Assembly (NCBI GenBank): GCA_965644295.1
Contig: CBFFRP010000394.1
Coordinates: forward strand, 162,182-226,181
Direction: 5' to 3'
DNA length: 64,000 nucleotides
Source of the DNA: Paraphysomonas bandaiensis
Lineage: Eukaryota; Protista; Chrysophyceae
Positions 30,850 to 49,281 of this stretch are shown here, piece by piece (positions within the stretch are counted from its first letter, which is position 1; each line of letters starts with the position of its first letter). The position numbers were made by a program, and so were the translations under genes. The notes beneath the pieces were generated by a model, which had not been told where the DNA came from, made no database searches, and was given only the letters and a program-made list of their open reading frames with translations.

Positions 30850-31285
30850 CGTGAATGTCTGATTATTAGCAATAGGCGTGAAAGAATCAGGACTAAAGTA
30901 GCAAAACAATTTAACTAAACTCCCATATCCTACTTCTTAGCGCTGCGAAAGCTGTTTGTGCGTCACCGCAATCACCAAGGTGCAAACACTTTCGCTCTGT
31001 CACTCAAAGTAGATCCTGTGAGCAAGCAGAATGTTGATATCCCTGACATCTGTGATTTCAGGATTTTTGAGTCTTTAAGGTGAACATCCCGGATGCTTGA
31101 CTTCAGCAGGCAGCCCAATACCCCGGATGCACTGAGGTGGACCAATTCCCGGATGCTTGACTTCAGCAAACAGCCAAATCCCCCGGATGCTCTTGAGGTG
31201 GGCCCATTCCTGGATACCTGTTTATTCGTCAAGGCCTAAAGACGTCTACACAAGTTACACTTATTAGTGTCCCTTGCACCACTCA
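30850..31285 (-). repeat. Inverted copy of the dispersed repeat family with internal 60-bp duplication
   Basis: TTGTGCGTCACCGCAA...CCAAGGTGCAA; CCCGGATGC units; TGTTTATTCGTCAAGGC matches the reverse complement of ~14150-14430. Confidence 0.82.
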
Positions 31286-31868: not shown

Positions 31869-34800
31869 CTAACCACTACCACCGCGCTTCTTCGTAGGAG
31901 ACTGCACTAACAATTTCCGACTAGAACGAAGCTCAGGAGGAGACCCACCTACACGTCTTGGTGGTGCAGTGGCAGATAAGCCAGACGATGTGTTACCAAC
32001 TGACCTAAAGTTACCACTACCTCCACCTCCTAAGGCCTCTATCAAATCCTCTCGTACATGAGTCTCATGCTCACCATCATCATAATCAATGTCGTAACTA
32101 CCATCACCACGATCTCGGGATATAACACCAGGATAGAACTTACTCTTCCCACGATATCTCGCCTTCACCTTACTACCAACGCGCAAACGACCTTTACGAC
32201 CCATACCATCATCACTGTCGTAACCAATGCCACCACCACCTCCCAAGGCCTCTATCAAATCCTCTCGCACACGAGTCTCATGCTCACCATCATCATAATC
32301 GATGTCGTAACTACCATCACCGCGATCTCGGGATATAACACCAGGATAGAACTTACTCTTCCCACGATATCTTGCCTTCACCCTAGTGCCAACGCGAAGC
32401 AGATCAGATTTAAAAGATACCGTCCCACCGCGCGGAGACTGTGATCGACGAATGCTACTGCCAGCATCATTATCAACAACAATTAGTTCCTCAAATACTC
32501 GAGACTCATGCTCACCATCATCATAATCAATGTCAAACGTACCATCACCACGTTCTCGGGATATAACACCAGGATAGAACTTACTCTTCCCACGATATCT
32601 CGCCTTCACCTTACTACCAACGCGCAAACGACCTTTACGACCCATACCATCATCACTGTCGTAACCAATGCCACCACCACCCAAGGCCTCTATCAAATCC
32701 TCTCGTACACGAGTCTCATGCTCACCATCATCATAATCAATGTCAAACGTACCATCACCACGATCTCGGGATATAACACCAGGATAGAACTTACTCTTCC
32801 CACGATATCTTGCTTTCACCTTACTACCAACGCGCAAACGACCTTTACGACCCATACCATCATCACTGTCGTAACCAATGCCACCACCACCTCCCAAAGC
32901 CTCTATCAAATCCTCTCGTACACGAGTCTCATGCTCACCATCATCATAATCGATGTCAAACGTACCATCACCACGATCTCGGGATATAACACCAGGATAG
33001 AACTTACTCTTCCCACGATATCTTGCTTTCACCTTACTACCAACGCGCAAACGACCTTTACGACCCATACCATCATCACTGTCGTAACCAATGCCACCAC
33101 CACCTCCCAAGGCCTCTATCAAATCCTCTCGTACACGAGTCTCATGCTCACCATCATCATAATCAATGTCAAACGTACCATCACCACGATCTCGGGATAT
33201 AACACCAGGATAGAACTTACTCTTCCCACGATATCTTGCTTTCACCTTACTACCAACGCGCAAACGACCTTTACGACCCATACCATCATCACTGTCGTAA
33301 CCAATGCCACCACCTCCACCTCCTAAGGCCTCTATCAAATCCTCTCGCACACGAGTCTCATGCTCACCATCATCATAATCGATATCAAACGTACCATCAC
33401 CACGATCTCGGGATATAACACCAGGATAGAACTTACTCTTCCCACGATATCTCGCCTTCACCTTACTACCAACGCGCAAACGACCTTTACGACCCATACC
33501 ATCATCACTGTCGTAACCAATGCCACCACCACCTCCCACAGCCTCTATCAAATCCTCTCGTACACGAGTCTCATGCTCACCATCATCATAATCGATGTCA
33601 AACGTACCATCACCACGATCTCGGGATATAACACCAGGATAGAACTTACTCTTCCCACGATATCTCGCCTTCACCTTACTACCAACGCGCAAACGACCTT
33701 TACGACCCATACCATCATCACTGTCGTAACCAATGCCACCACCACCACCCAAGGCCTCTATCAAATCCTCTCGTACACGAGTCTCATGCTCACCATCATC
33801 ATAATCAATGTCAAACGTACCATCACCACGATCTCGGGATATAACACCAGGATAGAACTTACTCTTCCCACGATATCTTGCTTTCACCTTACTACCAACG
33901 CGCAAACGACCTTTACGACCCATACCATCATCACTGTCATATGCACCACCACCACCCAAGGCCTCTATCAAATCCTCTCGCACACGAGTCTCATGCTCAC
34001 CATCATCATAATCAATGTCAAACGTACCATCACCACGATCTCGGGATATAACACCAGGATAGAACTTACTCTTCCCACGATATCTTGCTTTCACCTTACT
34101 ACCAACGCGCAAACGACCTTTACGACCCATACCATCATCACTGTCGTAACCAATGCCACCACCACCTCCCAAAGCCTCTATCAAATCCTCTCGTACACGA
34201 GTCTCATGCTCACCATCATCATAATCGATATCAAACGTACCATCACCACGATCTCGGGATATAACACCAGGATAGAACTTACTCTTCCCACGATATCTCG
34301 CCTTCACCTTACTACCAACGCGCAAACGACCTTTACGACCCATACCATCATCACTGTCGTAACCAATGCCACCACCACCTCCCACAGCCTCTATCAAATC
34401 CTCTCGCACACGAGTCTCATGCTCACCATCATCATAATCAATGTCAAACGTACCATCACCACGATCTCGGGATATAACACCAGGATAGAACTTACTCTTC
34501 CCACGATATCTCGCCTTCACCTTACTACCAACGCGCAAACGACCTTTACGACCCATACCATCATCACTGTCGTAACCAATGCCACCACCACCACCCAAGG
34601 CCTCTATCAAATCCTCTCGTACACGAGTCTCATGCTCACCATCATCATAATCGATATCAAACGTACCATCACCACGATCTCGGGATATAACACCAGGATA
34701 GAACTTACTCTTCCCACGATATCTCGCCTTCACCTTACTACCAACGCGCAAACGACCTTTACGACCCATACCATCATCACTGTCGTAACCAATGCCACCA

Positions 34801-37800
34801 CCACCTCCCACAGCCTCTATCAAATCCTCTCGCACACGAGTCTCATGCTCACCATCATCATAATCGATGTCAAACGTACCATCACCACGATCTCGGGATA
34901 TAACACCAGGATAGAACTTACTCTTCCCACGATATCTTGCCTTCACCTTACTACCAACGCGCAAACGACCTTTACGACCCATACCATCATCACTGTCATA
35001 TGCACCACCACCTCCCAAGGCCTCTATCAAATCCTCTCGTACACGAGTCTCATGCTCACCATCATCATAATCAATGTCAAACGTACCATCACCACGATCT
35101 CGGGATATAACACCAGGATAGAACTTACTCTTCCCACGATATCTCGCCTTCACCTTACTACCAACGCGCAAACGACCTTTACGACCCATACCATCATCAC
35201 TGTCGTAACCAATGCCACCACCACCCAAAGCCTCTATCAAATCCTCTCGTACACGAGTCTCATGCTCACCATCATCATAATCGATGTCAAACGTACCATC
35301 ACCACGATCTCGGGATATAACACCAGGATAGAACTTACTCTTCCCACGATATCTCGCCTTCACCTTACTACCAACGCGCAAACGACCTTTACGACCCATA
35401 CCATCATCACTGTCGTAACCAATGCCACCACCACCTCCCACAGCCTCTATCAAATCCTCTCGCACACGAGTCTCATGCTCACCATCATCATAATCAATGT
35501 CAAACGTACCATCACCACGATCTCGGGATATAACACCAGGATAGAACTTACTCTTCCCACGATATCTCGCCTTCACCTTACTACCAACGCGCAAACGACC
35601 TTTACGACCCATACCATCATCACTGTCATATGCACCACCACCTCCTAAGGCCTCTATCAAATCCTCTCGTACACGAGTCTCATGCTCACCATCATCATAA
35701 TCAATGTCAAACGTACCATCACCACGATCTCGGGATATAACACCAGGATAGAACTTACTCTTCCCACGATATCTCGCCTTCACCTTACTACCAACGCGCA
35801 AACGACCTTTACGACCCATACCATCATCACTGTCATATGCACCACCACCTCCTAAGGCCTCTATCAAATCCTCTCGTACACGAGTCTCATGCTCACCATC
35901 ATCATAATCAATGTCAAACGTACCATCACCACGATCTCGGGATATAACACCAGGATAGAACTTACTCTTCCCACGATATCTCGCCTTCACCTTACTACCA
36001 ACGCGCAAACGACCTTTACGACCCATACCATCATCACTGTCGTAACCAATGCCTCCACCACCCAAGGCCTCTATCAAATCCTCTCGTACACGAGTCTCAT
36101 GCTCACCATCATCATAATCAATGTCAAACGTACCATCACCACGATCTCGGGATATAACACCAGGATAGAACTTACTCTTCCCACGATATCTCGCCTTCAC
36201 CTTACTACCAACGCGCAAACGACCTTTACGACCCATACCATCATCACTGTCATATGCACCACCACCACCCAAGGCCTCTATCAAATCCTCTCGTACACGA
36301 GTCTCATGCTCACCATCATCATAATCAATGTCAAACGTACCATCACCACGATCTCGGGATATAACACCAGGATAGAACTTACTCTTCCCACGATATCTCG
36401 CCTTCACCTTACTACCAACGCGCAGACGACCTTTACGACCCATACCATCATCACTGTCGTAACCAATGCCACCACCACCCAAGGCCTCTATCAAATCCTC
36501 TCGCACACGAGTCTCATGCTCACCATCATCATAATCAATGTCAAACGTACCATCACCACGATCTCGGGATATAACACCAGGATAGAACTTACTCTTCCCA
36601 CGATATCTCGCCTTCACCTTACTACCAACGCGCAAACGACCTTTTCGACCCATACCATCATCACTGTCATATGCACCACCACCACCCAAGGCCTCTATCA
36701 AATCCTCTCGCACACGAGTCTCATGCTCACCATCATCATAATCAATGTCAAACGTACCATCACCACGATCTCGGGATATAACACCAGGATAGAACTTACT
36801 CTTCCCACGATATCTTGCTTTCACCTTACTACCAACGCGCAAACGACCTTTACGACCCATACCATCATCACTGTCGTAACCAATGCCACCACCACCCAAA
36901 GCCTCTATCAAATCCTCTCGTACACGAGTCTCATGCTCACCATCATCATAATCAATGTCAAACGTACCATCACCACGATCTCGGGATATAACACCAGGAT
37001 AGAACTTACTCTTCCCACGATATCTCGCCTTCACCTTACTACCAACGCGCAAACGACCTTTACGACCCATACCATCATCACTGTCATATGCACCACCACC
37101 TCCCAAGGCCTCTATCAAATCCTCTCGTACACGAGTCTCATGCTCACCATCATCATAATCAATGTCAAACGTACCATCACCACGATCTCGGGATATAACA
37201 CCAGGATAGAACTTACTCTTCCCACGATATCTCGCCTTCACCTTACTACCAACGCGCAAACGACCTTTACGACCCATACCATCATCACTGTCATATGCAC
37301 CACCACCTCCCAAGGCCTCTATCAAATCCTCTCGTACACGAGTCTCATGCTCACCATCATCATAATCAATGTCAAACGTACCATCACCACGATCTCGGGA
37401 TATAACACCAGGATAGAACTTACTCTTCCCACGATATCTCGCCTTCACCTTACTACCAACGCGCAAACGACCTTTACGACCCATACCATCATCACTGTCA
37501 TATGCACCACCACCACCCAAGGCCTCTATCAAATCCTCTCGTACACGAGTCTCATGCTCACCATCATCATAATCAATGTCAAACGTACCATCACCACGAT
37601 CTCGGGATATAACACCAGGATAGAACTTACTCTTCCCACGATATCTCGCCTTCACCTTACTACCAACGCGCAAACGACCTTTACGACCCATACCATCATC
37701 ACTGTCATATGCACCACCACCACCTCCCACAGCCTCTATCAAATCCTCTCGCACACGAGTCTCATGCTCACCATCATCATAATCAATGTCAAACGTACCA

Positions 37801-40800
37801 TCACCACGATCTCGGGATATAACACCAGGATAGAACTTACTCTTCCCACGATATCTCGCCTTCACCTTACTACCAACGCGCAAACGACCTTTACGACCCA
37901 TACCATCATCACTGTCATATGCACCACCACCTCCCAAGGCCTCTATCAAATCCTCTCGTACACGAGTCTCATGCTCACCATCATCATAATCAATGTCAAA
38001 CGTACCATCACCACGATCTCGGGATATAACACCAGGATAGAACTTACTCTTCCCACGATATCTCGCCTTCACCTTACTACCAACGCGCAAACGACCTTTA
38101 CGACCCATACCATCATCACTGTCATATGCACCACCACCTCCCAAGGCCTCTATCAAATCCTCTCGTACACGAGTCTCATGCTCACCATCATCATAATCAA
38201 TGTCAAACGTACCATCACCACGATCTCGGGATATAACACCAGGATAGAACTTACTCTTCCCACGATATCTCGCCTTCACCTTACTACCAACGCGCAAACG
38301 ACCTTTACGACCCATACCATCATCACTGTCATATGCACCACCACCTCCCAAGGCCTCTATCAAATCCTCTCGTACACGAGTCTCATGCTCACCATCATCA
38401 TAATCAATGTCAAACGTACCATCACCACGATCTCGGGATATAACACCAGGATAGAACTTACTCTTCCCACGATATCTCGCCTTCACCTTACTACCAACGC
38501 GCAAACGACCTTTACGACCCATACCATCATCACTGTCATATGCACCACCACCACCCAAAGCCTCTATCAAATCCTCTCGTACACGAGTCTCATGCTCACC
38601 ATCATCATAATCAATGTCAAACGTACCATCACCACGATCTCGGGATATAACACCAGGATAGAACTTACTCTTCCCACGATATCTCGCCTTCACCTTACTA
38701 CCAACGCGCAAACGACCTTTACGACCCATACCATCATCACTGTCATATGCACCACCACCACCCAAGGCCTCTATCAAATCCTCTCGTACACGAGTCTCAT
38801 GCTCACCATCATCATAATCAATGTCAAACGTACCATCACCACGATCTCGGGATATAACACCAGGATAGAACTTACTCTTCCCACGATATCTCGCCTTCAC
38901 CTTACTACCAACGCGCAAACGACCTTTACGACCCATACCATCATCACTGTCATATGCACCACCACCTCCCAAGGCCTCTATCAAATCCTCTCGTACACGA
39001 GTCTCATGCTCACCATCATCATAATCAATGTCAAACGTACCATCACCACGATCTCGGGATATAACACCAGGATAGAACTTACTCTTCCCACGATATCTCG
39101 CCTTCACCTTACTACCAACGCGCAAACGACCTTTACGACCCATACCATCATCACTGTCATATGCACCACCACCTCCCAAGGCCTCTATCAAATCCTCTCG
39201 TACACGAGTCTCATGCTCACCATCATCATAATCAATGTCAAACGTACCATCACCACGATCTCGGGATATAACACCAGGATAGAACTTACTCTTCCCACGA
39301 TATCTCGCCTTCACCTTACTACCAACGCGCAAACGACCTTTACGACCCATACCATCATCACTGTCATATGCACCACCACCCAAAGCCTCTATCAAATCCT
39401 CTCGTACACGAGTCTCATGCTCACCATCATCATAATCAATGTCAAACGTACCATCACCACGATCTCGGGATATAACACCAGGATAGAACTTACTCTTCCC
39501 ACGATATCTCGCCTTCACCTTACTACCAACGCGCAAACGACCTTTACGACCCATACCATCATCACTGTCATATGCACCACCACCACCCAAAGCCTCTATC
39601 AAATCCTCTCGCACACGAGTCTCATGCTCACCATCATCATAATCAATGTCAAACGTACCATCACCACGATCTCGGGATATAACACCAGGATAGAACTTAC
39701 TCTTCCCACGATATCTCGCCTTCACCTTACTACCAACGCGCAAACGACCTTTACGACCCATACCATCATCACTGTCATATGCACCACCACCACCCACAGC
39801 CTCTATCAAATCCTCTCGTACACGAGTCTCATGCTCACCATCATCATAATCAATGTCAAACGTACCATCACCACGATCTCGGGATATAACACCAGGATAG
39901 AACTTACTCTTCCCACGATATCTCGCCTTCACCTTACTACCAACGCGCAAACGACCTTTACGACCCATACCATCATCACTGTCATATGCACCACCACCAC
40001 CCAAAGCCTCTATCAAATCCTCTCGCACACGAGTCTCATGCTCACCATCATCATAATCAATGTCAAACGTACCATCACCACGATCTCGGGATATAACACC
40101 AGGATAGAACTTACTCTTCCCACGATATCTCGCCTTCACCTTACTACCAACGCGCAAACGACCTTTACGACCCATACCATCATCACTGTCGTAACCAATG
40201 CCACCACCACCCAAGGCCTCTATCAAATCCTCTCGCACACGAGTCTCATGCTCACCATCATCATAATCAATGTCAAACGTACCATCACCACGATCTCGGG
40301 ATATAACACCAGGATAGAACTTACTCTTCCCACGATATCTCGCCTTCACCTTGGTGCCAACGCGCAAACGACCTTTACGACCCATACCATCATCACTGTC
40401 ATATGCACCACCACCTCCCAAGGCCTCTATCAAATCCTCTCGTACACGAGTCTCATGCTCACCATCATCATAATCAATGTCAAACGTACCATCACCACGA
40501 TCTCGGGATATAACACCAGGATAGAACTTACTCTTCCCACGATATCTCGCCTTCACCTTACTACCAACGCGCAGACGACCTTTACGACCCATACCATCAT
40601 CACTGTCATATGCACCACCACCTCCCACAGCCTCTATCAAATCCTCTCGTACACGAGTCTCATGCTCACCATCATCATAATCAATGTCAAACGTACCATC
40701 ACCACGATCTCGGGATATAACACCAGGATAGAACTTACTCTTCCCACGATATCTCGCCTTCACCTTACTACCAACGCGCAAACGACCTTTACGACCCATA

Positions 40801-43800
40801 CCATCATCACTGTCATATGCACCACCACCTCCTAAGGCCTCTATCAAATCCTCTCGTACACGAGTCTCATGCTCACCATCATCATAATCAATGTCAAACG
40901 TACCATCACCACGATCTCGGGATATAACACCAGGATAGAACTTACTCTTCCCACGATATCTCGCCTTCACCTTACTACCAACGCGCAAACGACCTTTACG
41001 ACCCATACCATCATCACTGTCATATGCACCACCACCTCCTAAGGCCTCTATCAAATCCTCTCGTACACGAGTCTCATGCTCACCATCATCATAATCAATG
41101 TCAAACGTACCATCACCACGATCTCGGGATATAACACCAGGATAGAACTTACTCTTCCCACGATATCTCGCCTTCACCTTACTACCAACGCGCAAACGAC
41201 CTTTACGACCCATACCATCATCACTGTCATATGCACCACCACCTCCCAAGGCCTCTATCAAATCCTCTCGTACACGAGTCTCATGCTCACCATCATCATA
41301 ATCAATGTCAAACGTACCATCACCACGATCTCGGGATATAACACCAGGATAGAACTTACTCTTCCCACGATATCTCGCCTTCACCTTACTACCAACGCGC
41401 AAACGACCTTTACGACCCATACCATCATCACTGTCATATGCACCACCACCTCCTAAGGCCTCTATCAAATCCTCTCGTACACGAGTCTCATGCTCACCAT
41501 CATCATAATCAATGTCAAACGTACCATCACCACGATCTCGGGATATAACACCAGGATAGAACTTACTCTTCCCACGATATCTCGCCTTCACCTTACTACC
41601 AACGCGCAAACGACCTTTACGACCCATACCATCATCACTGTCGTAACCAATGCCACCACCACCCAAAGCCTCTATCAAATCCTCTCGTACACGAGTCTCA
41701 TGCTCACCATCATCATAATCAATGTCAAACGTACCATCACCACGATCTCGGGATATAACACCAGGATAGAACTTACTCTTCCCACGATATCTCGCCTTCA
41801 CCTTACTACCAACGCGCAGACGACCTTTACGACCCATACCATCATCACTGTCATATGCACCACCACCCAAAGCCTCTATCAAATCCTCTCGCACACGAGT
41901 CTCATGCTCACCATCATCATAATCAATGTCAAACGTACCATCACCACGATCTCGGGATATAACACCAGGATAGAACTTACTCTTCCCACGATATCTCGCC
42001 TTCACCTTACTACCAACGCGCAGACGACCTTTACGACCCATACCATCATCACTGTCATATGCACCACCACCACCCAAGGCCTCTATCAAATCCTCTCGTA
42101 CACGAGTCTCATGCTCACCATCATCATAATCAATGTCAAACGTACCATCACCACGATCTCGGGATATAACACCAGGATAGAACTTACTCTTCCCACGATA
42201 TCTCGCCTTCACCTTACTACCAACGCGCAGACGACCTTTACGACCCATACCATCATCACTGTCATATTCACCACCACCACCCAAAGCCTCTATCAAATCC
42301 TCTCGCACACGAGTCTCATGCTCACCATCATCATAATCAATGTCAAACGTACCATCACCACGATCTCGGGATATAACACCAGGATAGAACTTACTCTTCC
42401 CACGATATCTCGCCTTCACCTTACTACCAACGCGCAAACGACCTTTACGACCCATACCATCATCACTGTCATATGCACCACCACCTCCCAAGGCCTCTAT
42501 CAAATCCTCTCGTACACGAGTCTCATGCTCACCATCATCATAATCAATGTCAAACGTACCATCACCACGATCTCGGGATATAACACCAGGATAGAACTTA
42601 CTCTTCCCACGATATCTCGCCTTCACCTTACTACCAACGCGCAAACGACCTTTACGACCCATACCATCATCACTGTCATATGCACCACCACCTCCTAAGG
42701 CCTCTATCAAATCCTCTCGTACACGAGTCTCATGCTCACCATCATCATAATCAATGTCAAACGTACCATCACCACGATCTCGGGATATAACACCAGGATA
42801 GAACTTACTCTTCCCACGATATCTCGCCTTCACCTTACTACCAACGCGCAAACGACCTTTACGACCCATACCATCATCACTGTCGTAACCAATGCCACCA
42901 CCACCCAAAGCCTCTATCAAATCCTCTCGTACACGAGTCTCATGCTCACCATCATCATAATCAATGTCAAACGTACCATCACCACGATCTCGGGATATAA
43001 CACCAGGATAGAACTTACTCTTCCCACGATATCTCGCCTTCACCTTACTACCAACGCGCAGACGACCTTTACGACCCATACCATCATCACTGTCATATGC
43101 ACCACCACCACCCAAGGCCTCTATCAAATCCTCTCGTACACGAGTCTCATGCTCACCATCATCATAATCAATGTCAAACGTACCATCACCACGATCTCGG
43201 GATATAACACCAGGATAGAACTTACTCTTCCCACGATATCTCGCCTTCACCTTACTACCAACGCGCAGACGACCTTTACGACCCATACCATCATCACTGT
43301 CATATTCACCACCACCACCCAAAGCCTCTATCAAATCCTCTCGCACACGAGTCTCATGCTCACCATCATCATAATCAATGTCAAACGTACCATCACCACG
43401 ATCTCGGGATATAACACCAGGATAGAACTTACTCTTCCCACGATATCTCGCCTTCACCTTACTACCAACGCGCAGACGACCTTTACGACCCATACCATCA
43501 TCACTGTCATATGCACCACCACCACCCAAAGCCTCTATCAAATCCTCTCGCACACGAGTCTCATGCTCACCATCATCATAATCAATGTCAAACGTACCAT
43601 CACCACGATCTCGGGATATAACACCAGGATAGAACTTACTCTTCCCACGATATCTCGCCTTCACCTTACTACCAACGCGCAGACGACCTTTACGACCCAT
43701 ACCATCATCACTGTCATATGCACCACCACCACCCAAGGCCTCTATCAAATCCTCTCGTACACGAGTCTCATGCTCACCATCATCATAATCAATGTCAAAC

Positions 43801-46800
43801 GTACCATCACCACGATCTCGGGATATAACACCAGGATAGAACTTACTCTTCCCACGATATCTCGCCTTCACCTTACTACCAACGCGCAAACGACCTTTAC
43901 GACCCATACCATCATCACTGTCATATGCACCACCACCACCCACAGCCTCTATCAAATCCTCTCGTACACGAGTCTCATGCTCACCATCATCATAATCAAT
44001 GTCAAACGTACCATCACCACGATCTCGGGATATAACACCAGGATAGAACTTACTCTTCCCACGATATCGCGCTCGTATTCTGGCTCCTTTGCGTATTTTT
44101 TTCTGTACATTATCGGTGTCGCTATCGTAATGATTTTCTGGCTGTATATAACAGGCATCGACGTTGAATTCTTTATCACCAGTGTCATACTCTACGTCAT
44201 AGCAGTCACGATCTCGAACTCTTGATATACGTCCTGGTTTCGGTATCCCACGGCCTTGAAATTTCGCGCGTACACGTTGATCTGTTTTGAACACTCGAAC
44301 TTTATTAACAGATATTACTCTTACGTTTCGAGGGTGTAGCCACTCGTCTACTTCGCCGTCATCGTATAGTATATCAACTAAACCATCCTGATGGACTTTG
44401 TGAATCATACCGCCACACCATCTTCCCTTCCCTCTGTATCTAGCCTCAACAACATCGCCCTTTCTAATCTCCCTTCTTTCATAAGGACTACCACTGCGTG
44501 ATCGTGATCTTCGACGCGAGGACGAAAAGGATCGGCGAGTTCTAACACCTTCGCCTGAACTGTCACTTTCATAATCAGATTTGCGAATATCGCGCCTCGA
44601 ACTCCGAAGGGGTCTATAATCGTCAGATTTTCTCCGCTTAGATGGACGAGAAGATATGGTAATTTCCCTTATATTTGAACAATTTAATGAGGACTGCACA
44701 GTAGCAATACAACAGACATACCGCATTGCCGCGAATGCTCTTAAAAATTCATAAAAACTAACTGTTCGACGAGTTCCTATATGCTTGCGTTGTCTTAAGT
44801 ACTGTGCAATATCCCTGCCCAAAATATCATTTCATTGTAGTAATGATACGAATTTAGCACCTTCGTGGAACAACAATGCCGGCTTCACATAGGGCCTAAT
44901 CGTAAGTTCCAATAGCATTGAATAAAGCAAACAAAAGAGAGAGCAATATTTCCTTACTTGGCAAGTTTCTGGGGCTGTGATACTGCCGTCCACACTGAAA
45001 CGATCAAAAATTCCTTTCATTTCGGCAAGCTGTACACACTGGTAAAACCGAAAGCAGATATCATTGAATAGGTCAACTACCATTTTAATATCTATAATTT
45101 CTTCTTCAGGAAGACCTATACGGAGTAATTCAATTTTAACAATGCCTTGATACAATAAGGAATAAACCTTGTCGACGCAATCGGTCCGTGGCATTGAAGT
45201 ATTCCTCGTCGCTTTCATCATCAGCTCTTTCTCTCCACTTTTCGTTTTCTAATTTCCGGTCTCCCTCTTTATGAGTGGCAACTGATGACGAACCTTCTCC
45301 AACTGGGACGTCTGTCATGACTACGTTAACACAAACCACAGCAATTTTTCGAGAACATACCTGGGTCTGTACCCGCAAAAAACGACGAGTATTGTCCCAC
45401 AAACTCAGGGAAGCTCACACACGCGTTATTATCTTTGAGTCGCAGTAACCAAGCATTAACCTAATAATATCAAACAATATTGTTACAAATCGCAGGAGCG
45501 GTAATGAAAACTGGGAATACATCAGCAGAATCAACTGGACGGCCCATATATACCAGCGCCTGCTCTACTTGGGCTCCTGATAGCTGCCCAGATTCCGACG
45601 TATCAAACCGATCAAATACTGCTTTGAGCTTGGCCACCAACTACATATATATTCAGAAAATCTTGACGTGTATGGTGTAAATGCACCTTAATTCGGTGTG
45701 TATCAAGCATCATCACATATTCATCTAGCTCATCCAAAGTGTGCTCCTGCAGAAATATTATAGGTGTATAATACCACACAAGTAACGCTGTACTTGGGCT
45801 TGAAGTTTCTGTTTCTCGATTAAGGTTTCCACACAACGCATCAGCTTTCTCTCCAGTACAGAATTGGAAATCAATAAAACATTTCTAAGAATGTGTCAAA
45901 TAATAGAGAGCAAGTTATATTAATAACCGTATAAAGTCATGATCGATCCTCAAGAGTAGTGGCCCATCCACGTTATGCTCTTTGAATAAGTCTAAGAACA
46001 TATTCAACTGCACTTCAGCAGAATCTACATTGTCGATACCTGATATAACTGAAAACCCGTTCTCATGCAGCCAAGAAACCACACGATTGCAGTCCCATTT
46101 CATTACGTCAATATCGACGTTATACCTCTCCCTCATGATCGCATCCCGTACGTTTTCGCTCGGCTCACCGCCCCCTGTAGAATCCCTACTGCCACGCATA
46201 TCTCGAATTCCAATGTTGGTAGAGTTCGAGTTTATACTTTTATGGCCTGTAGGAAAGAGCTCTTCTGTAGACGTATGCCTGATAATATTTTAAGTCGGAC
46301 CTCATTTCAATAAGAACGTGTGCATTTTTACCTATACTCTATATTACAGTTAACTAACACCACTCCAAATGTCCCAAACGATCGCAGAAACTCTCTTGTA
46401 TTACCGTCAGGGACAGGAAATTCCGGTGAAGTATCTGTCGCCACAACGAGGTGCTATACGAACACAGAGTGGTCATAGTGCATATGGAAGGATATAATGG
46501 TGTTTACCTCAAAATCTTTTGCTCCATCTGATACTGCAGCTAAAACAGCAGCCTTCTCAGCGCTAACATCAGGCAGAAGTGTAACGTCCGGGTGCTGCGC
46601 TCTCTCGTGATTTCCTGTGGAGGACTTCACAGCATACACGTCACAGCCGGAATAAACCTGCAACAGCATCATACAATCGCAGCACCCATAGCATACATCA
46701 AATACCTTTCCGCTCCCTGTCAGCAAAGCACATCCGCGGGAGTGATGAAACTTTTGCCCTGAAACTCGGCTCTTCTCACAAGCTCGGAGAGCAATATCTA

Positions 46801-47373
46801 TGAGTTCTTCCAAAATTGTCATCCCAGTCGCTCCAAATGCCTGTACGAGATTAAAATATGAATAATGACAGCAATAAAGGTATTTACTTCCAAGCCACTA
46901 AAATGAGATCTGTACACGTTCCCGTAGTCGGACTTCATAGATGACATTAAATTAGGCTCTACGGAGTGAACAGCCGGTCCGGATTCCCGAAGAGGAGATG
47001 CCGGTACTAGAATATCTCTGTCTTTCGACTCTGCAGCATCAGATGAAAATCTGATGACGTCTGTTTGGGTACCACTGAGTATAGTTTTCATTGCCACTGA
47101 GCTGAATAAGTTACGCATATATCAATAACATTTACAGAATGGAGGCAAGTAGAACCTGTACAAGTTCGGATGCAAACGAGAGGGCATCACAGGTTCAGCT
47201 GATTTCTTTGGACTCAATGTCGGCTGGAGGGATGTAGTCAATTCTGGACTCGCGGTTCGCTTTTTTAATCGTTTCTGTTCAGTTTTTCCCAATAGACGTC
47301 GACTCATCCCAAGTACTCTGTCCATTGTCGCGTCGCTGCGCTTCATACGTTCTTTTGACTTCCGAATATCCAT
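31869..47373 (-). CDS. Giant multidomain protein, ~17 exons, ~4,900 aa: pseudo-cytidine deaminase + SAM + 2 EF-hand pairs + RS region + ~60 Tudor/Agenet domains
   Basis: Manual splicing through ~45-60-nt GT-AG introns keeps one frame from ATG 47373 into the 4317-aa ORF. Motifs seen: GCALLTGSGKVYSGCDV..SAEKAAVLAAVSDG..PDGNTREFL..STEELFP; WDCNRVVSWL..FKEHNVDGPLLL; KAVFDRFDTSESGQLS; VSFPEFV; VSFYEFL; ARYRGKSKFYPGVI...FDIDYDDGEHE. Confidence 0.8.
32040..44090 (-). repeat. Coding tandem array of about 58 near-identical 204-216-bp Tudor units
   Basis: Unit RLRVGSKVKARYRGKSKFYPGVISRDRGDGTFDIDYDDGEHETRVREDLIEALGGGG(A/IG/E)YDSDDGMGRKG; count estimated from array length. Confidence 0.97.
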
Positions 47374-48050
47374 GACTATTAGCAGTACTTAGATAGACCG
47401 CTATACTCCTATACCACTATACAGTTATGGATACAATTATATATGTACCACTTAATTTATACACACACTAATCTCTTATCATATTCACAAGAATTGTAGG
47501 TACCACTCATCAATTTTGTAATATGTAGAGGAGAAACGAGAATGAACTGCAGGAATATGCAGCAGTAACTAATTAATTAAATGAAACTTAAGGTGCAGTG
47601 GATATGTACAAACATACTGCTGCATATATATACAGTCCATCTCCTACGTCCCTTATAGGAAGCATATATTCAAAGGAGAAGAATTCAAAAACAGAAAATT
47701 TCTACGAAAATAAAATTACATCATCACAAAAAGCATATAATTTACAAGTATTCATCTCTATTTTTATATTTTACGGGCACAAAATTGTACGAATTACAAA
47801 AATGTATAAAAATATATTCCAAAAAAACTCTGTGTACAGGAGTGACCAGCTAGAAGTACAGTACGTAGTTTTCGAATCCACAGGACATGAGGAGCAGCAC
47901 AATACATTCAATTTTCAAAATAATTTGGCACATATACATGCGTCTAGATATATGCACATATAAGCCGCCATAGTTGTGTGTTTCTTATACATTAAACATA
48001 TTGAGTAAGGATATCCTCAGATACTTCTTACTATTTGTGTAAATAGCTGT

Positions 48051-49281
48051 ATGGATCGCTACCAGAAGATTGAGAAGGATGGGAGCAACTCTGGGGAGGG
48101 CACTTACGGAATTGTCTATAAGGCAAAAAATAAGTTAACAGGAAAGATGGTTGCTCTAAAGGTACTTCATTCAAATACAAATGAAATTATTGATATGTGT
48201 GATTGGTGATAGAAAATTAAACACGCAATGTCTGAAGAGGGAATACCCAGTACGTCTCTGAGGGAAATTGCAGTTTTGAAGCATTTACAGCATCCGAACA
48301 TCGTCAAGTAGGGTTGTGGATATGAAATAATACTGAATATTTAACTTGTATCTAGGTTGATAGAGTTCATCGTTAGCGAAGGAAAATTATATCTTGTGTT
48401 TGAGCATGTAGACAAGGATTTGAAGAAGTATATGGCAGGTATGCAGCATACTGCATATTATTTTGCCTGTCGAGCTAAGTTAATCTGCAGCTGTGAGTGG
48501 ACCACTTGATCCCAAGTTGATTCAAGTACGTGTGTATTTGATTTTAATACTGTTACCTTATGTTTGTATTGGTAGTCATATGCTCATCAACTGATAGAAG
48601 GAGTAAATTATTGTCACCTCCATGGTGTCATGCATCGGTACCTATTAAACTCCTGCGCTCTTTACGCATCTCACTGCAAATATTCAGGGATTTGAAGCCA
48701 CAAAATATTCTTGTATCAAGAGATGGTAAGCTCAAGCTTGCTGATTTTGGACTCGCTCGTGCATTCGTGCCACCGATTCGCCCCTTCACCCACGAGGTTG
48801 TTACTCTATGGTATCGCTCTCCAGAGATCCTTCTCGGAATGAAGGCCTATGCCCTCCCAATGGATATGTGGGCCGTTGGTGCGATAATTGCTGAAATGTC
48901 AACAAAGCGACCGCTCTTTCCTGGCGACTCAGAAATTGATGAACTCTTCAAGATATTCAGGTGGATTTTGCGTTCTACTCGAAATGTTTACCATGAACTC
49001 AATGTATATGTATGTTAGAATCCTAGGAACGCCATCTGAAAAGACGTGGCCAGGAGTCACAAACTTACAGGACTGGAATGAGGCATTTCCAGTGTGGCCT
49101 GAGTTGAAGTTGCAAAGGTTTATTCCCCGCATGTGCGAGGAGGGTGTCGACCTAGTAAAGGTATGTTGAATATTGTAGCTGTATAATGGCTAATTTGCTT
49201 TAGAAACTGCTGAATATGGATCCGAAACATCGCCTTTCTGCTAATGAAGCACTCCAACACCCCTATATCAGCGAACTTTAG
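48051..49281 (+). CDS. CDKA: Cyclin-dependent kinase, CDK1/CDKA family (stramenopile CDKA2-like), multi-exon
   Basis: [20 protein letters not shown]; PSTSLREI; HRDLKPQN; DFGLARAF; [10 protein letters not shown]; [16 protein letters not shown]. Confidence 0.93.

Follow-up and report, generated by a model that had tools for sequence, protein, structure and literature searches.

The window analysed here is a stretch of 64,000 nucleotides (nt) from the chrysophyte Paraphysomonas bandaiensis (contig CBFFRP010000394.1), and positions are those of the window unless another contig is named. Its minus strand carries, from 47373 to 31869, a single gene of 17 exons, whose product is a protein of 4,896 amino acids (aa). 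By its sequence the protein is a member of the stramenopile family in which a cytidine deaminase (CDA) domain and a SAM domain are combined with Tudor domains, and it falls into the subgroup of that family with a dead deaminase. Three defining elements of the family are found: an N-terminal domain of the CDD/CDA clade, a SAM domain after the deaminase, and tandem Tudors at the C-terminus of the same chain.

Most of the gene lies within a minus-strand open frame of 4317 codons (31869-44822), and the rest is scattered over small minus-strand open reading frames (ORFs) at 44.8-47.4 kb. The first-pass annotation had proposed that these small frames join the large one through about 16 GT-AG introns, and all 16 of them are confirmed in RNA. 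As read from the minus strand between 47.4 and 44.6 kb, the introns are 43-62 nt long, have consistent phases and are GT..AG without exception; the exons add up to 14,691 nt, corresponding to 4,896 codons and a stop. The start codon is the ATG at 47373, the first in-frame ATG downstream of an in-frame stop. Exons 1 (47373-47156) and 2 (47101-46888) encode a basic, low-complexity N-terminus (46888-47373) with a KRLKKR cluster, of which the part at the end of exon 2 aligns to orthologues; the intron between them is 54 nt long, and the junction 47101/47156 is seen in RNA contigs. The CDA fold (46240-46840) is encoded by exon 3 (46840-46706), exon 4 (46657-46508), exon 5 (46453-46332) and the 5' part of exon 6 (46278-46040). 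The SAM domain (45794-46140) occupies the 3' part of exon 6, to 46040, together with exons 7 (45991-45928) and 8 (45884-45794). A long helix and a first EF-hand pair (45361-45746) are encoded by exons 9 (45746-45687), 10 (45640-45521) and 11 (45460-45361), a charged low-complexity linker between the two EF-hand pairs by exon 12 (45311-45168), and a second, EF-hand-like pair (44722-45115) by exons 13 (45115-45081), 14 (45029-44958), 15 (44895-44861) and 16 (44814-44722), the last of which lies inside the start of the 4317-codon frame. Exon 17 (44667-31869) contains everything else: a basic stretch rich in Arg and Ser (the RS stretch, 44469-44667, read from the translation), with a SKRRK cluster and an Arg-Ser run, then two divergent Tudors (44126-44468), 58 near-identical Tudor units (32030-44102), and a short C-terminal tail rich in Ser, Pro and Arg that ends in the stop codons TAG TAG (31869-32029).

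Three of the introns, namely introns 3 (46658-46705, 48 nt), 6 (45992-46039, 48 nt) and 16 (44668-44721, 54 nt), have lengths that are multiples of three and are free of stops. They therefore keep the frame if retained, and this is why a list of ORFs shows them as coding. All three are removed in the RNA contigs, including the junction 44667/44722 at the in-frame intron 16.

The RNA evidence comes from public runs, in 20 of which the window stretch was found; four of these were mapped onto 44080-48400. Three runs from three separate studies (X9, X10 and X11), all of an organism B that differs from the window sequence by about 0.6%, each contain one contig of about 2.7 kb that lacks all 16 introns at the predicted coordinates, 13 of the introns being listed as joints and the remaining three being visible in the table of contig pieces. 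These joints include those of the SAM exons and of the second EF-hand pair. Intron 11 has three in-phase candidate acceptors, of which the one in the middle, at 45311, is used in the RNA. The fourth run (X5, also organism B) has a contig of 7.6 kb in which the introns are kept, which implies that the intron-less form derives from RNA and is not a genomic variant. A run that belongs to the species of the window and may, by its label, be RNA (X22) gave no word matches to the stretch. The spliced contigs start at 47553-47563, which gives a 5' untranslated region (47374-47563) of about 185 nt with short upstream ORFs, one example being a frame of about 17 codons that opens with an ATG near 47510, ahead of the main ATG at 47373. 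The intergenic interval 47564-47994 is uncovered in all three runs. At the other end the contigs cover the two divergent Tudors and extend 41 nt beyond 44080, about 33 nt into the first homogeneous Tudor unit, which is where a short-read assembler is expected to stop.

Since the spliced contigs run from the head into the first unit of the array, head and tail belong to one transcript. The predicted junctions are thus all supported, and transcripts do not end before 44.8 kb. The idea that there are two genes, one for the head and one for the tail with a start of its own, has as its only basis that a prokaryote-style ORF list shows the two parts separately, and it can be put aside with near certainty: spliced contigs in three runs cross the junctions between exons 15 and 16 and between exons 16 and 17 into the giant frame, and orthologues encode the head and the Tudors in one uninterrupted ORF.

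One of these orthologues was central to the analysis of the head. The unique N-terminal part of the large frame, used as a query, found P0007, a complete and intronless ORF of 1021 aa on a metagenome contig of 7 kb, which has the same head followed by about six Tudors. Exons of the window gene were searched and aligned one at a time, and P0007 stood in for the whole head. Exons 2-17 can be aligned with P0007 and with further orthologues in the same order and with no overlaps, which supports the splice model independently of the RNA. The order of domains proposed in the first-pass annotation (basic N-terminus, CDA, SAM, two EF-hand pairs, RS stretch, two divergent and about 58 near-identical Tudors) was in this way verified exon by exon.

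Pfam searches with single window exons gave no match for the CDA part, and the domain is visible through P0007 and through its fold. Residues 95-255 of P0007 match human cytidine deaminase (1MQ0, E=9e-11) and other tetrameric CDAs, and comparison of a predicted model of residues 95-640 with tetrameric CDAs by Foldseek gave target-normalised template modelling (TM) scores of 0.75-0.86, with a root-mean-square deviation (rmsd) of 1.8-2.8 Å. The window exons are collinear with this region of P0007 and with the CDA region of oomycete relatives, and the stretch 46508-46840 of the window itself has a weak NCBIfam cytidine deaminase match (E=0.0045). Active CDAs have as zinc ligands the Cys or His of a C/H-A-E motif and both Cys of PCxxC. 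In the window protein all three Cys are replaced: the aligned positions hold Ser (SAE for CAE), and Asp and Thr (PDGNT for PCGxC). Exon 4 still encodes the catalytic Glu, which is by itself insufficient for catalysis. The alignment thus bears out the first-pass description of the domain as a pseudo-deaminase, and the head deaminase is predicted to be inactive, its zinc site having been lost.

In the window the SAM stretch is interrupted by an intron, and for this reason its matches to SAM_1 and SAM_2 are weak (E about 0.08). In P0007 the corresponding region matches SAM_2 at E=6.9e-11, and the exon alignment is collinear. For the first EF-hand pair, Pfam finds EF-hand_6 on exon 10 (E=7e-5), and the pair aligns with canonical EF-hands of oomycetes and with helices in the predicted model of P0007. 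The part of that model aligned to exon 12 has a predicted local distance difference test (pLDDT) score below 50, suggesting a disordered linker. The second pair has no Pfam match; a profile built from 20 orthologues matches lobes of calmodulin and calmodulin-like (CML) proteins at E=3.6e-6 to 1e-3. In the predicted model of P0007 four-helix bundles are formed, with the fold of paired helix-loop-helix motifs. Between organisms A and B the coding differences in the head are ten synonymous and four non-synonymous, a pattern that indicates purifying selection on the head.

A canonical EF-hand loop is 12 residues long, supplies acidic ligands and ends in Glu or Asp (position 12), and none of the loops in the window is of this kind. 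In the first pair, position 12 of the first loop is Gln and the ligand pattern is missing from the second site, while in the second pair the first loop is two residues short and the second has no acidic ligands. This bears directly on the suggestion, made in the first-pass annotation, that the protein is a scaffold regulated by Ca2+, with the EF-hand pairs sensing calcium and switching assembly. Two pairs with the EF-hand fold are indeed present, the oomycete orthologues have canonical loops (EF-hand_1, E about 1e-15), and paralogous Tudor-array genes of the same genome carry EF-hands. However, the window loops are degenerate where the oomycete ones are canonical, and those of the close orthologue P0007 are equally degenerate. 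Calcium regulation of this protein is therefore very improbable. The EF-hand pairs belong to the conserved head of the family.

The protein contains 60 Tudors in total. The 58 near-identical units share a common ARYRGKS anchor and are 68-76 aa long including linkers rich in Gly and Asp; the last three have diverged. Preceding them are the two divergent Tudors, which give an Agenet match at residues 122-168 of the large frame. The unit table thus reproduces the first-pass count of two plus about 58. According to Tandem Repeats Finder, the stretch 32496-44072 consists of 55.5 copies of a 207-bp unit that match at 97% and contain no indels. GC content climbs across the array from about 0.37 to 0.47, and the plus-strand GC skew drops to about -0.53. 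Long plus-strand ORFs also cover the array (32058-44225), with up to 1648 aa (35889-40835); these were rejected as by-products of a repeat that is free of stops in the antisense frame.

In 55 units a core of 43 residues is identical in protein sequence, and the variation between units is confined to the linker, where the Gly run differs in length, Ala alternates with Ile-Gly or Glu, and Leu with Val. The types of unit are arranged as a non-periodic mosaic that shows a trend from 5' to 3' and ends in the three diverged units. The DNA of the 55 cores has seven variable sites, and at all seven the variants are synonymous; since about three quarters of the sites are non-synonymous, such an outcome would be improbable under neutral evolution, and it indicates purifying selection on each repeat.

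The length of the array could conceivably be an artefact of assembly or the result of neutral runaway expansion, with the functional protein having far fewer Tudors. The array is not bridged by any read or contig, the RNA contigs, assembled from short reads, end about 33 nt inside it, and orthologues have 4-30 units. We nonetheless consider this unlikely. A non-periodic mosaic of variants with diverged units at the edge is what a resolved array looks like after unequal crossing-over; the frame stays open over 12.9 kb and all variants shared among the cores are synonymous; a relative in Phytophthora ramorum has at least 55 units; and the same genome contains two paralogous arrays, of at least 35 and at least 29 units.

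Several profiles recognise the repeats in Pfam: Tudor_5 (E=6.6e-28 on the last 276 residues), 53-BP1_Tudor (1e-15), Tudor_3, SGF29_Tudor, the PTM/DIR17 Tudor and Agenet. PF00567 gave no match on the window repeats at E<=1, and the units lack the length (about 180 aa) and the SN-like extension of extended Tudors. AlphaFold, run on two units with an alignment of 23 rows, predicts two five-stranded barrels with pLDDT of about 90, joined by linkers below 50; together with a predicted TM score (pTM) of 0.39, this suggests that the units behave as beads on a string. With this two-unit model Foldseek found, at a probability of 1.00, the tandem Tudor of 53BP1 (E=1e-5), the SETDB1 Tudor, the Agenet domains of ADCP1/AGDP1, BAHCC1 and SGF29; the rmsd of about 13 Å over two units reflects a differing relative orientation of the units. 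The models therefore place the Tudors in the histone-reader subtype of 53BP1, SGF29 and Agenet, as predicted single barrels on flexible linkers.

A unit aligns by phmmer to Tudor 1 of 53BP1 (E=0.003), and the alignment puts Tyr, Tyr, Tyr, Asp and Glu of the unit at the positions of W1495, Y1502, F1519, D1521 and Y1523. These five residues form the cage of 53BP1 for H4K20me2, and mutation Y1523A is reported to leave H4K20me2 binding intact (PMC5974088). Four of the five positions are thus kept, among them the Asp, which is nearly invariant across the family. The same small barrel is found in the methyl-lysine readers 53BP1, SGF29, SETDB1 and plant Agenet ADCP1/AGDP1. The arrangement differs, in that 53BP1 has a packed tandem pair, whereas the window protein is predicted to have single barrels on flexible linkers and has Glu as its fifth cage residue.

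The family was described by Iyer, Zhang, Rogozin and Aravind (Nucleic Acids Res 2011, PMC3239186) as a CDA-SAM family restricted to stramenopiles, with 1-22 Tudors. The same authors drew attention to a protein of Ectocarpus that has 23 Tudors and whose deaminase is inactive, regarded large Tudor arrays as typical of stramenopiles, and proposed that the family acts in a ribonucleoprotein (RNP) complex that edits small non-coding RNAs; multi-Tudor germ-granule proteins were cited as an analogy (PMC3239186). The term EF-hand does not occur in the text of that paper, and our literature search found no paper on the family after 2011. The first-pass statement that no protein with this architecture has been described does not stand, since the family is described in PMC3239186 and giant relatives are present in public databases.

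An exhaustive HMMER search with the head of P0007 gave 163 proteins at E<=1e-10, and the relatives that carry names (oomycetes, Aureococcus, Ectocarpus and Hondaea) are all stramenopiles. A further homology search returned no named close orthologues. The relatives fall into two types. Orthologues with an intact zinc site come from oomycetes and are 1,200-1,500 aa long in Thraustotheca, Pythium oligandrum, P. insidiosum and Plasmopara, and 746 aa in Aphanomyces. Their named records are hypothetical proteins, of which two have the automatic UniRef names 'Calmodulin' and 'Cytidine deaminase'. The records from Pythium oligandrum (TMW64049.1, P0046), Plasmopara halstedii (CEG43325.1, P0068) and Thraustotheca clavata (OQS06562.1, P0038) have the same order of domains in the head and C-terminal Tudors, and oomycete orthologues are 23-31% identical to the P0007 head over its whole length. 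They differ from the window protein in keeping the second zinc motif, PCGxC (all of the ten intact-type orthologues), and, in most, the first: CAE is found in six of the ten, the Thraustotheca protein P0038 reads CPE at the aligned position, and the pattern for a CAE-type motif matched nothing in P0034, P0060 and P0061. They differ also in their EF-hand loops, canonical in the four that were scanned with Pfam (P0038, P0044, P0046 and P0060), and in the number of Tudors, which by pattern count is 0-4 in those counted.

The zinc site has been lost in P0007 and in 17 other relatives; proteins without it include P0007-like sequences, a MAST-4 protein, the Aureococcus protein of 2714 aa, Ectocarpus, the Hondaea protein of 2489 aa and a JGI protein of 3264 aa. 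Those available at full length have from four to at least 30 Tudors, as against 60 in the window. A quick tree of the head, unrooted, drawn at the midpoint and without an outgroup, separates the ten intact from the 18 lost by one branch with 100% SH-aLRT support. Across the sequences compared, loss of the zinc site goes together with degenerate Ca2+ loops and expansion of the Tudors.

Within the second type, the closest described protein is that of Ectocarpus (P0187/P0188), which has the same N-terminal CDA, SAM and tandem Tudors, an inactive deaminase and an EF-like module; the window protein differs from it in having 60 Tudors rather than 23, with 55 cores identical in protein sequence, and in a gene with 16 very short introns. 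Proteins of Aureococcus anophagefferens (P0186, 2714 aa) and Hondaea fermentalgiana (P0193, 2489 aa), both named cytidine deaminase in the databases, resemble the window protein in their dead CDA and their SAM domain. These two, and the Phytophthora ramorum poly-Tudor proteins P0178 (3889 aa, at least 46 units) and P0179 (4577 aa, at least 55 units), are giants with from 20 to at least 55 Tudors of the window subtype, under database names that are automatic. The arrays of P0178, P0179 and P0180 have about 46-55 or more units and are about 51% identical to the window array, implying that arrays of this length arose in other stramenopile lineages too. A Pfam scan of the N-terminus of P0179 found an SR-25-like region and no CDA head; the N-termini of P0178 and P0180 were not scanned. 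In the close orthologue P0014 the units are near-identical among themselves and differ from the window units at fixed positions, which is the pattern of concerted evolution.

The reading that we favour, and consider somewhat more probable than the alternatives taken together, is that the protein is a non-catalytic, oligomerising and highly multivalent nuclear reader of methyl marks. The first-pass idea of an extremely multivalent scaffold holds. On this reading the head would carry out neither deamination nor Ca2+ sensing and would serve for oligomerisation and anchoring, as is suggested by the tetramers typical of the CDA clade, seen in the solved structures that it matches, and by the polymerisation typical of SAM domains. 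SAM domains often polymerise. Each Tudor would bind one methylated residue weakly, through a cage formed by the equivalents of W1495, Y1502, F1519 and D1521, and the conserved Asp of the 53BP1-type cage makes mono- or dimethyl-lysine the most likely ligand. Sixty such sites per chain, multiplied by oligomerisation of the head, would give a very high avidity for arrays of marks, and methylated chromatin, or else a nuclear body, may be what the protein in this way cross-links or compacts. Its basic clusters and RS stretch suggest that it resides in the nucleus. The number of units would change by unequal crossing-over within the array.

The nearest functional parallel may be with the MBT-SAM Polycomb proteins (L3MBTL1, Scm and Sfmbt), in which readers of low methyl-lysine states from the Royal family are combined with SAM polymerisation to compact chromatin. 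The parallel is one of function only: these proteins have MBT repeats, with two to four readers, lack a deaminase and EF-hands, and are not homologous to the window protein as wholes. Drosophila Tudor and TDRD1/4/6 likewise combine many Tudors in a single chain, which serves as a multivalent scaffold for methylated partners. Their Tudors, 4-11 per protein, are of the extended type, measure about 180 aa and recognise symmetric dimethyl-arginine, whereas the window units are 69 aa long and do not match PF00567.

Several points weigh against this reading. Since 2011 the family has been known only through its sequences, no member having been studied at the bench. The likeness to MBT-SAM proteins is an analogy, and oligomerisation of the CDA domain is drawn from its clade. 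The cage has Glu as its fifth residue, and methyl-arginine or some other ligand is conceivable. A role in RNA work would suit the RS stretch and the SAM domain just as well. Expression is seen in a close relative only, and for the first 2.7 kb or so of the mRNA only, and the copy number of the array rests on one assembly, with no read or contig that spans it.

A serious rival, to which we give a minor but real share of probability, follows the hypothesis of Iyer et al. (2011): the protein would be a scaffold for RNPs or small RNAs, in which the array reads dimethyl-arginine on RNA-binding proteins and assembles an RNA complex, with a link to a stramenopile RNAi branch, and the dead deaminase binds cytidine in RNA without editing it. 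This has been proposed for the family (PMC3239186). The RS-rich stretch adjoins the Tudors, an SR-25-like N-terminus is found in the giant Phytophthora relative, and the head still has its catalytic Glu. Animal multi-Tudor proteins work in this way. On the other hand, each unit is a minimal barrel, about 50 aa long, that is nearest to readers of histone methyl-lysine and not of the extended TDRD/SMN type, the cage Asp is nearly invariant in the family, and the deaminase here would be unable to edit.

A secreted protein and a cytoskeletal fibre were also considered and rejected. On reading (no predictor was run), the basic N-terminus shows no apparent signal peptide, and there are no coiled-coil or motor domains; the cytoskeletal fibre that had been suggested earlier has nothing that points to it.

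The head is present once in the 62.6-Mb assembly, which contains further Tudor arrays. Contig C144 has a frame of 3313 aa (168235-178173) with at least 35 units and, after these, EF-hand-like and PUB-like regions, and contig C108 a frame of 2438 aa (208798-215100) in which at least 29 units make up a two-unit higher-order repeat and EF-hands come next. The arrays at C69:47384-49201 and C66:489414-490685 are shorter. Units are 97-100% alike within an array and 40-65% between arrays, which indicates that each array is homogenised on its own.

On the plus strand, a gene for a CDK-like protein kinase (48051-48400) starts about 680 bp upstream of the ATG of the Tudor gene, in the opposite direction. 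It has two short GT..AG introns, 48159/48211 and 48307/48356, which are confirmed by RNA contigs at a far greater word depth. The two transcripts are separated by roughly 490 bp, which would serve both as a divergent promoter. At the other end of the Tudor gene, a tandem repeat of 60 bp with 2.1 copies and 86% matches (31087-31215) lies about 650 bp downstream of the stop.

A more far-reaching, and distinctly speculative, interpretation is that the family exists in two states. In the enzyme state, represented by oomycetes, the zinc site is intact, the Ca2+ loops are canonical and the Tudors are few. In the scaffold state the deaminase and the EF-hand loops are dead and the Tudors expandable, and the oligomerising protein, with its 60 binding sites, would be a main architectural cross-linker of methylated chromatin or of a nuclear condensate in the alga. 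If this is true, valency would be tuned between species by unequal crossing-over, and the Tudors might read methylated Lys or Arg in basic linkers of the GRKGR type in neighbouring molecules, which would reinforce assembly.

Whether or not this is so, the locus is an extreme and well-documented member of a known family and does not form a new category. Its Tudor count is among the largest for a single protein, at 60, compared with at least 55 in the Phytophthora relative and 11 in Drosophila Tudor. What it adds is a gene model with all splice junctions confirmed, and evidence of purifying selection on every repeat of an array that is homogenised within the species. It thus provides a natural extreme case for work on algal chromatin and on multivalent condensate scaffolds.

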